Part shown: one piece after another, positions 32,777-63,206 of the stretch | How positions within the stretch are numbered: the first letter of the stretch is position 1 | Layout of the letters: the number at the start of each line of letters is the position of its first letter | The notes under the pieces: generated by a model | Told to the model about the DNA's origin: nothing | Databases searched by the model: none | What the model saw: the letters and a program-made list of their open reading frames with translations, nothing else | Position numbers and translations under genes: made by a program | Source: Macrostomum lignano | Lineage: Eukaryota | Direction: 5' to 3' | Length of the DNA: 64,000 nucleotides | Assembly: GCA_002269645.1 (NCBI GenBank) | Contig: NIVC01000412.1 | Location: 248,001 to 312,000 of the forward strand

Positions 32777-35700
32777 TCACAGTCCGGTGCTGAAGACCTC
32801 ATTGCGCTGGTGGCCACCGCAGGTGCTGCCGGGGTCGCCAAGACAGGGCAAGCGGCAGTCGCGGTTGGCTCGGCCGTGCCGACCGAAGGAGTTGCCGCAG
32901 GCGCACCACTGCGAGGCCTGCGTGATGAGCATTCAAAGCGTTTTATCATCGGGCATGATGTTCCAATAAAATTCGAGTGATTTAAGAATTAGAAACAGTA
33001 TGAAGCTGATGTAGTACAGTTGGACTTTTTACATACATGGGTTTGTAAAAACTTGGTGCGCTAGCACCAAGAGGCTTTAGCACCAAAGGGGCGCCAGCAC
33101 CAAAGGGGCGCCAGCACCAAAGGGGCGCCAGCACCAAAGGGGCGCCAGCACCAAAGGGGCGCCAGCACCAAAGGGGCGCCGCCAGCACCAAAGGGGCGCC
33201 GCCAGCACCAAAGCGGCGCCAGCACCAAAGGGGCGCCGCCAGCACCAAAGAGGCGCCAGCACCAAAGAGGCGCCAGCACCAAAGGGGCGCCGCCAGAACC
33301 AAAGGGGCGCCGCCAGAACCAAAGGGGCGCCGCCAGCACCAAAGGGGCGCCGCCAGCACCAAAGCGGCGCCAGCACCAAAGGGGCGCCGCCAGCACCAAA
33401 GAGGCGCCAGCACCAAAGGGGCGCCGCCAGAACCAAAGGGGCGCCGCCAGCACCAAAGGGGCGTCGCCAGCACCAAAAGGGCGTCGCCAGCACCAAAGGG
33501 GCGCCAGCACCAAAGGGGCGCTAGCACCAAAGCGGCGCCGCCAGCACCAAAGGGGCGCCAGCACCAAAGGGGCGCCAGCACCAAAGGGGCGCCGCCAGCA
33601 CCAAAGAGGCGCCAGCACCAAAGAGGCGCCAGCACCAAAGGGGCGCCGCCAGCACCAAAGGGGCGCTAGCACCAAAGGGGCGCCGCCAGCACCAAAGGGG
33701 CGCCAGCACCAAAGGGGCGCCGCCAGCACCAAAGGGGCGCCAGCACCAAAGGGGTGCCAGCACCAAAGGGGCGCCAGCACCAAAGGGGCGCCGCCAGCAC
33801 CAAAGGGGCGCCAGCACCAAAGGGGTGCCTCCAGCACCAAAGGGGCGCCGCCAGCACCAAAGGGGCGCCGCCAGCACCAAAGAGGCGGCCAGCACCAAAG
33901 GGGCGCCAGCACTAAAAGGGGCGCCAGCACCAAAGGGGCGCCAGCACCAAAGGGGCGCCAGCACCAAAGCGGCGCCAGCACCAAAGGGGCGCCAGCACCA
34001 AAGGGGCGCCAGCACGAGAGGCGCCAGCTCAACTAGGGGCGCCAAAGCTACATGCATGTTCATACGTGTATATACAGTTCCAAAAGTTAGCGTGCCATAT
34101 AGGGGGGGGGGCATTTAGCAGAGGTGAATCTTATACCTGCATGGCGAAGTAGCGCCAACCGAGCGACCGGCAGCGGCGCCAGCAGGCGAGCCTGGTGGCG
34201 GCCTCGCCCAGGTGGTGCAGCCCGGAGGCGAAGTCCGGATCGTCTGGCTTGTCGATGAAGCAGCCCATTGCCGAGGCGGTGCCGTTGTCTGAAATATTCG
34301 GCCGCTTGTACAGTACATGGATGAAAGTATTTGATATCGTGTGGTTCTCCAAGTGGAATTAGAGGTAGGTTCGACCAATGACAGCTCAACTTTTGCTACC
34401 TGTTAGACCTGACATTCACTATAGCCTTAGAGGGCCTTAGAGACAAGGGTATAGCGAGTGGTTTCCAACCGTGAGACAAGGGCGCGCGAATCAAAAAACA
34501 CCAAATATTGCCGCTCTTTTACAAGTTTAACTGACTAACTAAAATAAGTAAAAAAGGCGCCTCGGCCATTGAACAGGCTCTTACGCCACTAGGAATAAAT
34601 TAGGTTCCTGGTTGGGAGTGTACTATGGTACACTAGGCTTCTAAGCTAGGCTAAAAGAGATTGTGACCAATCAAGCCGAGCAGGCGACACCAGTCGGGCT
34701 GAGGGCGGGCCCTACCCCCAGCTGTCGGGGCGTCACACACTTACTCCAAACACAAAACTAAACCTCGCAGTGGTTAGATTGGGTTGAGTGAACCATTCAG
34801 GGAAGCCCGTGCCTACTCCTGGGATAGTGTAGTCCAATAATGGTCATAAAGACCTCCCCACGGCCGTGGCAACCCGAAGGAGCCTCCCCACCCACTGAAC
34901 CCCGGGTACTCTTGCCAGACAGTCTCTTATCTTTGAGGCGGCAGGAGGGCTATTCGCCGGGACTGTTTCACCCTTTGCTTCACCAACCCGCCATTTTTAT
35001 TAGGCCGTGCCAACGGCCCCGTCCTGGTCAGACTCAGTCCTGGTTCTGGCACACTCCAGCTTTAATAGAGTCGCTGGCTGTTCGCTCAGAGGGCACTCCG
35101 AGGGGGACCGTCAGAGCACCAACTGGAACAGGTATAGGCCTGCCTTCCTATACAGCTACCCACAGCCCTTCGTGATCGACTATTACCCTCCAACCCAGCC
35201 TACTAACTCATTACAAGCTTTCGGCCAGGCAGAGACAAGTGTCACAGGGGTACTGCGGTTAGGCGTCTCTATGCGAGACAAAACCAAGAATATCATTATT
35301 CATTACTAGTTTACAAGATTAGGTAAACAGTACATGTATTAGAAATGTATTTATAGATTATTTTCTTATCGTATTTTCCATAATTATTTCTACTGTTAGT
35401 AGAATATCAAATAAAAGTTTAGAATATTTTTATACGCTGTATTTTAATTTATCGATTTGTTACTGTTTATACACATGTACGGTACTCCTTTCTTCCTTCC
35501 ATTCTTCTCAACTGCAACTGCAATATTCCACAGTATTCCCACACTATACATGTATATACATGTACATCTAACTGGGCTCTGCGCTCACCCCAGTCCTCCA
35601 GCCCTGTGGAGAACACCTCGTTCTGCTTGTCTCCGCCACAGGTAGCGCTGGGATCTCCGCTGCACCTCTCCTGGCAAGCTCCGGAGCCCAGAGCCACTCC

Positions 35701-62700: not shown

Positions 62701-63206
62701 GTCACTCTGATTCAGTCACTCTGATTCAGTCACTCTGATTCAGTCACTCTGATTAAGTGCACTCTGATTCCGTCACTCTGATTCCGTCACTCTGATTCAG
62801 TCACTCTGATTCAGTCACTCTGATTCAGTCACTCTGATTCAGTCACTCTGATTCAGTCACTCTGATTCAGTCACTCTGATTCAGTCACCCTGATTCAGTC
62901 ACTCTGATTCAGTCACTCTCATTCAGTCACTCTGATTCAGTCACTCTGATTCAGTCACTCTGATTCAGTCACTCTAATTCAGTCACTCTGAGTTAGTCAC
63001 TCTGATTCAGTCACTCTGATTCAGTCACTCTAATTCAGTCACTCTGATTCAGTCACTCTAATTCAGTCACTCTGAGTTAGTCACTCTGATTCAGTCACTC
63101 TGATTCAGTCACTCAGTTTGACCAATCTATACCTACCATTTTCTTCAGCCCTGACAGAGTCGCAGAGCGAGCAGCAGGCCAAGATGAAGATCAATCCCCA
63201 CCGCAT
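32777..63206 (-). CDS. Secreted protein with 12 tandem WSC domains, 15 exons, 1222 aa predicted
   Basis: Exons: 63206-63137 (signal peptide MRWGLIFILACCSLCDSVRAEEN), 62554-62240, 59926-59624, 59262-58966, 58227-58082, 57991-57838, 57763-57464, 56440-56147, 55907-55608, 54329-54036, 53512-53204, 52645-52349, 35885-35589, 34288-34137, 32917-32777 (stop). Each domain shows GC[FY], C-x3-C, GYxYFGLQ-like, CxCGN-like, C-x3-C and CGG-like motifs. All junctions are GT-AG and in frame. Confidence 0.9.
33060..34045. repeat. 17/20-bp minisatellite AGCACCAAAGGGGCGCC(GCC)
   Basis: Fills the intron that splits the last WSC domain. Confidence 0.96.
35990..52140. repeat. About 16-kb intronic minisatellite, 21-bp core GGGGCTCCAAACCAGAAGGTA with 24- and 31-bp variants and higher-order repeats
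   Basis: Direct reading. Rare variants recur at 3195-3196 bp spacing (46570/49765, 47125/50320, 48062/51258). Confidence 0.98.
53588..53905. repeat. 30-bp intronic repeat GGACTTCTACATCAGGAGACTGGTCTAGAA
   Basis: Direct reading. Confidence 0.92.
54415..55375. repeat. 16-bp minisatellite TGGTGCTAAAGCCCCT, nearly homogeneous
   Basis: Direct reading; left end grades into TGGTGCTGGCGCCCC units. Confidence 0.97.
56620..56840. repeat. 64-bp tandem repeat, about 3.5 copies
   Basis: GCTGACC recurs at 56621, 56685, 56749, 56813. Confidence 0.93.
57310..57470. repeat. 53-bp tandem repeat, 3 copies, spanning the WSC5 donor
   Basis: CAACCCA recurs at 57318, 57371, 57424. Confidence 0.85.
58455..58961. 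repeat. 10-bp repeat AACACCCTGA
   Basis: Begins directly at the GTAAGT donor of the WSC3 exon (minus strand). Confidence 0.95.
59340..59510. repeat. 10-bp degenerate repeat GGGGATCTGA
   Basis: Direct reading. Confidence 0.85.
59984..62233. repeat. About 2.25-kb (GATA)n microsatellite
   Basis: Direct reading; scattered GATAC and GACA variants; fills WSC intron 2. Confidence 0.98.
62572..63117. repeat. 14-bp repeat TTCAGTCACTCTGA
   Basis: Fills almost the whole of WSC intron 1. Confidence 0.96.

Follow-up and report, generated by a model that had tools for sequence, protein, structure and literature searches.

Among described proteins resembling the one analysed here, SiWSC3 of Serendipita indica is a secreted beta-glucan lectin made only of WSC domains (Wawra et al. 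2019, cited in PMC9252488 and PMC9024836). In the accounts given there, the WSC domains of SiWSC3 bind beta-1,3-glucan and those of ThCrd2 beta-glucan, fungal WSC lectins bind beta-1,3/1,6-glucan, the extracellular polysaccharide (EPS) matrix of Serendipita is enriched in WSC lectins, and SiWSC3 is known to bind long beta-1,3-glucan and to agglutinate. The vertebrate Wnt co-receptors Kremen1/2 carry one WSC domain between a kringle and a CUB domain in a transmembrane protein that binds Dkk and LRP6, and the account of the solved complex has the WSC domain of Kremen1 contacting proteins. Yeast Wsc1-type sensors combine a single WSC domain with a Ser/Thr-rich stalk, a transmembrane helix and a cytoplasmic tail; the cysteine-rich domain (CRD) of Wsc1 is described as having four disulfides and surface aromatic clusters, which have been proposed to serve protein clustering. 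In the free-living flatworm Macrostomum lignano (Platyhelminthes, Macrostomorpha), the reports of WSC proteins that we found in the literature concern the prostate only: knock-down of RNA815_80.4, a prostate-specific transcript encoding two WSC domains, abolishes antibody staining of the prostate gland, RNA interference (RNAi) against the WSCD2-like Mlig-pro46 lowers sperm competitive ability, and several other seminal-fluid protein (SFP) candidates are likewise WSCD2-like. Here we describe the gene Mlig005509.g3 in a 64,000-nt stretch of M. lignano DNA (contig NIVC01000412.1, positions 248,001 to 312,000 of the forward strand; hereafter the window, with coordinates counted from its first letter). 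The gene runs on the minus strand from 63206 to 32777 and encodes a 1223-aa protein composed of a signal-peptide-like N-terminus followed by 12 tandem WSC domains.

Searching the protein against Pfam revealed 12 stretches that match WSC (PF01822) with 529.8 bits against a cut-off of 27.8 and an E-value of 6.8e-163; no real Pfam domain besides WSC was detected in the 1223 residues, 98% of which are covered by the WSC units. Every one of the 12 units has exactly eight Cys, which fall into aligned columns and presumably form four disulfides per module. The units are diverse, with pairwise identities of 27-54% (mean 40%), and are joined by linkers of about ten residues. At the N-terminus, the segment MRWGLIFILACCSLCDSVRA, which precedes EEN, is built like a signal peptide, with n, h and c regions, V at -3 and A at -1, and this is also where the top 19-residue Kyte-Doolittle windows of the protein are found (1.27). 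Beyond it, no window of transmembrane level was detected anywhere in the protein, which ends without a transmembrane or glycosylphosphatidylinositol (GPI)-like tail; likewise, neither a catalytic domain nor a Ser/Thr-rich region was found. The mature protein was computed to have 1203 aa with 96 Cys and nine N-x-S/T sequons, a mass of ~134 kDa and an isoelectric point of 8.1. The module that has diverged furthest is domain 9, with 27-38% identity to the rest; it has neither the CGN nor the CGG motif and carries an insertion, and it may be degenerating.

The flatworm protein resembles SiWSC3 in that a signal peptide is followed by tandem WSC domains only, with neither enzyme nor anchor. The two differ in that SiWSC3 is fungal and has three WSC domains rather than 12, whereas the flatworm gene has an animal exon structure, each domain having its own exon and the introns being in phase 1. 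The kringle-WSC-CUB type I membrane architecture of Kremen is not present in the flatworm protein, in which Pfam finds only WSC and from which a transmembrane segment is absent; the stalk, helix and tail of Wsc1-type sensors are also missing, as is the layout of WSCD1/WSCD2, in which two WSC domains are combined with a sulfotransferase-like domain.

Matches of the protein among sequences of the Protein Data Bank (PDB) are the Kremen1 WSC domain and the CRD of yeast Wsc1. For domain 6, an AlphaFold model generated from a 44-sequence alignment of family domains reached a predicted local distance difference test score (pLDDT) of 95.2. Comparison using Foldseek identified the Kremen1 WSC domain (PDB 5FWS) as the best single-domain structural match, with a template modelling (TM) score of 0.85, a root-mean-square deviation of 1.0 Å and 32% identity. 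The fold is shared with Wsc1-type sensors, the Wsc1 CRD (PDB 7PZ2) aligning with a TM score of 0.74, and the model also superposes on the WSC domain of a Fusarium glyoxal oxidase and, more distantly, on PAN/apple modules. A three-domain model of domains 5-7 has a pLDDT of 90 and a predicted TM score (pTM) of 0.75, which suggests that these modules are well formed and closely packed with short linkers. In the models, which cover domains 5-7, each module is a compact PAN/apple-like WSC fold.

Our hand-built model is 100% identical (1223/1223 residues) to GenBank PAA83643.1 (BOX15_Mlig005509g3; UniRef100_A0A267GC98), a protein deposited as hypothetical or 'WSC domain-containing protein', and the deposited gene on contig NIVC01000412.1 (assembly Mlig_3_7, GCA_002269645.1) spans 30,430 bp that correspond base for base to window positions 32777-63206. 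Annotation of Mlig_3_7 drew on RNA evidence only, namely StringTie/TACO assemblies of RNA-seq reads, a mapped de novo transcriptome, trans-splicing and poly(A) data, and TransDecoder. As the deposited annotation is RNA-based, one transcript joins all 15 exons, the satellite-filled intron 12 included. Mlig005509.g3 is thus, on the basis of this deposited model, an intact, transcribed 15-exon gene, while looking up its full-length sequence in the assembly collection returned the GenBank contig and no transcript contig. An earlier note on this DNA, made from its letters, had described a signal peptide, 12 diverse eight-Cys WSC domains and an immediate stop after VFSTGL, with no transmembrane, GPI-like or catalytic segment. 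This anatomy is borne out, down to the exact coordinates 32777-63206, with the signal peptide recognized by rule and the absence of the other segments by Kyte-Doolittle and Pfam analysis; the concern raised there that the exons could be untranscribed or belong to several transcripts is answered, as far as the annotation goes, by the deposited RNA-seq-based model, which spans 15 of 15 exons. A fungal origin or contamination was rejected on account of the 995-kb M. lignano contig, the 14 spliceosomal introns, the domain-per-exon organization and the two syntenic paralogous copies.

The best match in the homologue search was BOX15_Mlig005509g2 (copy g2), with 96% identity. At its locus (L001), the gene is cut behind exon 10 by the end of the contig, while the stretch examined for a further copy, g1 (locus L002), contains exons 3-15, with exons 1 and 2 lying upstream of it. 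The annotation of copy g1 consists of the partial models P0064 and P0063, the latter of which joins exons 10-15 and ends in VFSTGL. Coding identity among the copies is 96-99% per exon, and in g1 and g2 all exons are open and the frame is kept. Between Mlig005509 copies, the synonymous divergence (dS) is ~0.067 and the ratio of nonsynonymous to synonymous divergence (dN/dS) is 0.27-0.30; the copies are therefore intact genes under purifying selection. In domain 9 of g1 (L002 10996-11304), one of the eight Cys is lost, RRTSCVD having become RRTSSVD. A convergent class II aminoacyl-tRNA synthetase gene adjoins the 3' side of both g1 and g3, indicating that the duplication was segmental. Intron 12 measures ~2 kb in g1 versus 16.5 kb in g3, so the expansion of its satellite is recent and copy-specific, and the satellite plays no part in the logic of the gene.

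Scanning 1.84 billion representative proteins without a profile gave 6851 matches at E <= 0.001, 213 of them at E <= 1e-30. Among the retrieved sequences, 29 have at least 10 WSC domains and 16 have at least eight WSC domains over at least 80% of their length, several of the latter being M. lignano paralogs and partial copies of Mlig005509.g3. Two M. lignano proteins, P0005 and P0006, have 13 WSC domains behind a signal peptide and no other Pfam domain, the partial models P0003 and P0007 contain 16 and 12 WSC domains, and in P0002 discoidin and VWA domains accompany 15 WSC domains. These poly-WSC paralogs are 32-38% identical to the 12-WSC protein over the full length and share both its genome and its class of architecture; some have linkers, tails or extra matrix domains, and they are uncharacterised. 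Outside Macrostomum, long arrays are predicted in the oyster Saccostrea cucullata (LOC134282764, 10 WSC), in aphids (P0019-P0023, six WSC with or without GH16, one having a GH16 glucanase-like domain), in a 5602-aa amphioxus protein (18 WSC), in the diplonemid Diplonema ambulator (P0072, 23 WSC), in the transcriptome of the blastogregarine Siedleckia nematoides (P0017/P0071/P0075, 8-15 WSC), and, among many fungal arrays, in the basidiomycetes Cryptococcus/Kwoniella (10-11 WSC with DUF1996). These proteins share long tandem WSC stretches with the 12-WSC protein, and several are nearly WSC-only, but they are uncharacterised predictions with 25-34% identity to it, many of which have extra domains. 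The patchy distribution of WSC arrays in aphids, the diplonemid and the blastogregarine could reflect independent expansions, transfer or contamination.

All 12 domains of the M. lignano protein are nearest to one WSC subtype, represented by domains d8 and d12 of P0002; when positional orthology was looked for between the 12-WSC array and the paralog arrays, none was found, this single subtype being matched by 12 of 12 domains. The combination of a single subtype with the lack of positional orthology points to internal duplication of one module followed by divergence. In keeping with this, the organization of one domain per exon with phase-1 introns at the boundaries shows that exon duplication within one WSC subtype built up the array.

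This WSC-only array is accordingly not unique, and Mlig005509.g3 is a member of a large uncharacterised poly-WSC family in M. lignano. The earlier note had held that animal WSC domains usually come in one or two copies, which fails at the level of the databases given the oyster, aphid and amphioxus arrays with 10, six and 18 copies. It had also known of no animal protein of such architecture, whereas paralogs in M. lignano itself carry 12-16 WSC domains, in some cases with nothing but a signal peptide in addition. Its proposal of a new system is unsupported, because the gene was already deposited, the family in this genome is sizeable, arrays occur elsewhere and the concept of a fungal secreted WSC-only lectin is established through characterised examples; in addition, papers on M. 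lignano had already listed WSC proteins as prostate or seminal-fluid candidates. What stands of that interpretation is the anatomy of an animal gene; its poly-lectin reading is plausible as a hypothesis, and its claim of novelty is overstated.

Taken together, the best explanation of the whole is that the 1223-aa precursor, with its 12 WSC domains, is exported and acts as a multivalent glycan binder or cross-linker of a secretion, which we hold to be somewhat better than an even chance. The mature protein would be disulfide-rich, probably N-glycosylated and exported into an extracellular secretion, where its 12 divergent WSC modules would jointly bind or cross-link polysaccharides or glycoconjugates, so that the protein might act as an agglutinin or matrix organiser, as SiWSC3 does on beta-1,3-glucan. 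By analogy with the fungal WSC lectins, polysaccharides or glycoconjugates are the most probable targets, and since the prostate is the only documented site of WSC expression in M. lignano, a reproductive or other gland secretion is the leading guess for where the protein would act.

Several points weigh against this explanation. The signal peptide was called from its n/h/c layout and the -3/-1 rule rather than by a predictor. The sole animal WSC domain with a solved complex, that of Kremen1, touches proteins and not sugars. As for the prostate, WSC transcripts reported from it are at most 1.7 kb long versus a 3.7-kb coding sequence here, and a dN/dS of 0.3 is unlike the fast evolution typical of seminal-fluid proteins. 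Finally, neither Mlig005509 nor Mlig002404 appears in the full texts and supplements searched (PMC7336406, PMC5730564, PMC5816591 and PMC8662610), and a search of the supplements of PMC4490696 gave only WSC keyword matches, in BLAST lists for RNA815_80.4.

A more specific possibility, which we consider rather doubtful, is that Mlig005509.g3 encodes a seminal-fluid protein, produced in prostate gland cells and transferred at mating, that acts on glycans of sperm or of the partner's antrum in sperm storage or competition. Table S1 of an in situ hybridisation screen lists 76 prostate-limited transcripts, 45 of which have a BLAST match; among these 45, at least 13 are explicitly WSC and, going by the labels, ~23-27 probably are. 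About ten more transcripts in this table are labelled 'fungistatic metabolite' or 'transmembrane receptor', and in our own homologue search these labels fit the WSC-containing proteins P0040 and P0033. WSC is therefore the commonest annotated class among the prostate-limited seminal-fluid candidates of M. lignano, which favours this possibility, as do the knock-down phenotype of RNA815_80.4 and the RNAi phenotype of Mlig-pro46, and the fact that Mlig005509.g3 is predicted to be secreted and has no other function-bearing domain. The prostate WSC proteins share with the 12-WSC protein the species, the domain family and secretion, and are the sole WSC proteins of M. lignano with expression and RNAi data. 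However, in Table S1 the prostate WSC transcripts encode ~2-3 WSC domains within at most 1.7 kb, none being ~3.7 kb or longer, as opposed to 12 domains in a coding sequence of 3672 nt; the dN/dS of 0.27-0.30 indicates ordinary purifying selection, and the gene identifier is missing from the supplementary tables searched. Transcript size and evolutionary rate together argue against Mlig005509.g3 being typical of the prostate set.

It is also conceivable, though unlikely in our judgement, that the protein is not a lectin but a structural or protein-binding scaffold of extracellular matrix or mucus, with the WSC domains serving as disulfide-knotted spacers or as protein-protein units in the manner of Kremen1. 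The participation of the Kremen1 WSC domain in protein complexes and the clustering role proposed for the Wsc1 aromatic patches are consistent with such a scaffold, as are the presence of discoidin and VWA matrix domains alongside 15 WSC domains in the closest paralog type, P0002, and the confident packing of the three-domain model (pTM 0.75). Against this, the isolated or WSC-only proteins that have been tested, SiWSC3 and ThCrd2, bind glucans, and the 12-WSC protein has no matrix-assembly domain of its own.

Less probable again is the reading that the earlier note had preferred, a gut or epidermal recognition lectin that would use the beta-glucans of diatoms and microbes to capture or agglutinate them, either in feeding or in innate defence. 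Cultures of M. lignano are grown on diatoms, which store a beta-1,3-glucan, and the binding of beta-1,3/1,6-glucan by fungal WSC lectins and the suitability of multivalency for agglutination fit such a role, but no WSC gene of gut or epidermis is reported in the M. lignano literature searched. Very improbable, finally, is an annotation artefact, with two genes fused across the 16.5-kb satellite, or a decaying duplicate or pseudogene: the genome is highly redundant, a model derived from ML2 (P0069) stops past domain 10 just before the satellite intron, the annotation of g1 is split and domain 9 is degenerate with a Cys lost in g1, yet all 15 exons are open, phase-compatible and bounded by GT-AG sites, exon 13 has neither a start codon nor a signal peptide of its own, g1 has the same junction of exons 12 and 13 over a 2-kb intron within the single model P0063, dN/dS is ~0.3, and the complete model stems from transcript-based annotation.

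The gene model itself was derived from the window, a eukaryotic, repeat-rich sequence in which composition and open reading frame (ORF) listings show recurrent Cys-rich frames on the minus strand from ~32.8 to 62.5 kb. A hidden Markov model (HMM) of the window's own domains, built from nine obvious units and run on the six-frame translation, located 12 WSC units, all on the minus strand (32780-62531), and detected no credible further unit elsewhere in the window. Exons were joined by hand at GT-AG sites, giving 15 open exons with compatible phases, 14 of 14 introns with GT-AG borders and a 3672-nt coding sequence that starts with the ATG at 63206 and ends in a TGA at 32777-32779, right behind ...NEVFSTGL. 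Units end in ...TG[ILV]xxW followed by a donor of the G/GTGAG type (the slash marking the exon end) and begin behind a ...cag acceptor. All 12 introns at unit boundaries, namely that between signal peptide and domain 1 and the eleven between domains, are in phase 1, while units 4 and 12 are each split by an additional intron, in phase 0 and at the identical position behind ...LQ, and are the exceptions to the rule of one domain per exon. Treating exons 13-15 as a separate gene was rejected, as exon 13 is without a start codon or signal peptide and the phases match; the paralog model P0063, which joins the same exons across a 2-kb intron, also counters such a separation.

In the order of transcription, all on the minus strand, a motif scan finds a TATAAA box at 63274-63279, 73 nt upstream of the ATG. 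Exon 1 (63206-63137), which codes for MRWGLIFILACCSLCDSVRAEEN and so holds the ATG and the signal-peptide-like segment, ends at the phase-1 donor G/GTAGGT and is conserved in paralogs g1 and g2. Domain 1 is encoded by exon 2 (62240-62557; HMM, splice sites and Pfam), the acceptor of which is a tandem cag/cag (NAGNAG) at window positions 62554-62560. The first AG is used in the g3 model (AEENAGPD) and the second in the g1 and g2 models (AEENGPD), and this acceptor accounts for the one-residue difference between the paralog models (AEENA-GP versus AEEN-GP), which could be a one-codon alternative splice or a difference in annotation. Exon 3 (59624-59926, domain 2) has the weakest donor of the gene, GTTCGT. 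Domain 3 occupies exon 4 (58966-59262), and domain 4 is divided between exon 5 (58082-58227), which ends in ...YFGLQ at the phase-0 donor, and exon 6 (57838-57991). Domain 5 follows in exon 7 (57464-57763), domain 6, the module modelled singly with a pLDDT of 95, in exon 8 (56147-56440; HMM), domain 7 in exon 9 (55608-55907) and domain 8 in exon 10 (54036-54329). The most divergent module, domain 9, was delimited by HMM and alignment in exon 11 (53204-53512), and domain 10 lies in exon 12 (52349-52645). Across the phase-1 intron 12 (35886-52348; 16,463 nt), which is almost wholly 21/42-nt satellite, domain 11 is found in exon 13 (35589-35885). The first half of domain 12 is in exon 14 (34137-34288), which ends in ...YFAMQ with its phase-0 donor placed as in domain 4, and the second half in exon 15 (32777-32917), with the TGA directly behind VFSTGL. 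Exons 4, 6, 7, 9, 10, 12 and 13 were placed by the HMM together with splice sites. A probable 3' untranslated region (UTR) extends over 31919-32776, with the first AATAAA signals at window positions 32099, 31966 and 31924, 677-852 nt past the stop.

Nearly every intron of the gene has a tandem array of its own, as does the 3'UTR, where a 23-mer is repeated 26 times (32134-32727). The intron 12 satellite (35975-52137) comprises 16.2 kb of a 21/42-nt unit in ~731 copies with 81-84% matches and produces strong GC skew (+0.2) and AT skew (+0.6). Minisatellites at 16971-17836, 18690-19217, 23779-24265, 33079-34015 and 35975-52137 have units of 17-25 nt with a common TTGGCGCC / GGCGCCAAA core, and TTGGCGCC occurs 122 times in the window against 1.8 expected; these minisatellites may form one satellite superfamily. 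Intron 2 carries a (GATA)n array (59972-62233) of ~565 copies at 98% purity, and at lower window positions there are a second ATAG array (15973-16215) and a 940-nt (AGAC)n array (13173-14112).

The convergent neighbour on the plus strand (~25958-31796) encodes a 676-aa class II aminoacyl-tRNA synthetase with tRNA-synt_2b and HGTP_anticodon domains, which by eye looks like a glycyl-tRNA synthetase (GlyRS). Its anticodon-binding domain was confirmed at 30273-30700, and a 12-nt repeat (30700-31429) lies directly behind the exon of that domain. Retroelement remains on the minus strand at 10506-11228 contain an integrase core domain (rve, E = 1e-10); a full ORF for reverse transcriptase, RNaseH and integrase is located just upstream of paralog g2 (L001 6548-9259), and in an older UniProt model, P0004, a retroelement gag-like sequence is fused to the WSC gene. 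The minus-strand ORF at 21651-22130, considered as a PP2C-like phosphatase, was dropped since it has no Pfam match.

WSC domains are poorly understood in animals, where besides Kremen there is almost no functional information. In M. lignano, WSC proteins are the dominant class of the annotated prostate secretome, and one of them has a sperm-competition phenotype. We tentatively entertain the broader possibility that a lineage-expanded set of giant secreted poly-WSC lectins has evolved in Macrostomum and perhaps also in further lophotrochozoans, oysters for example, in which the 12-valent member would cross-link glycans of a gland secretion (seminal fluid, mucus, or egg or cement material) through modules that read different sugars. 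M. lignano is tractable by RNAi, in situ hybridisation and transgenesis, and a WSC-only 12-mer is a convenient object for testing glycan binding by animal WSC modules and the contribution of multivalency. If the proposed function is correct, this would be the first WSC array of an animal to have its glycan-binding role defined, and would provide a molecular handle on the interaction of the ejaculate with the female tract or of the worm with its diatoms.

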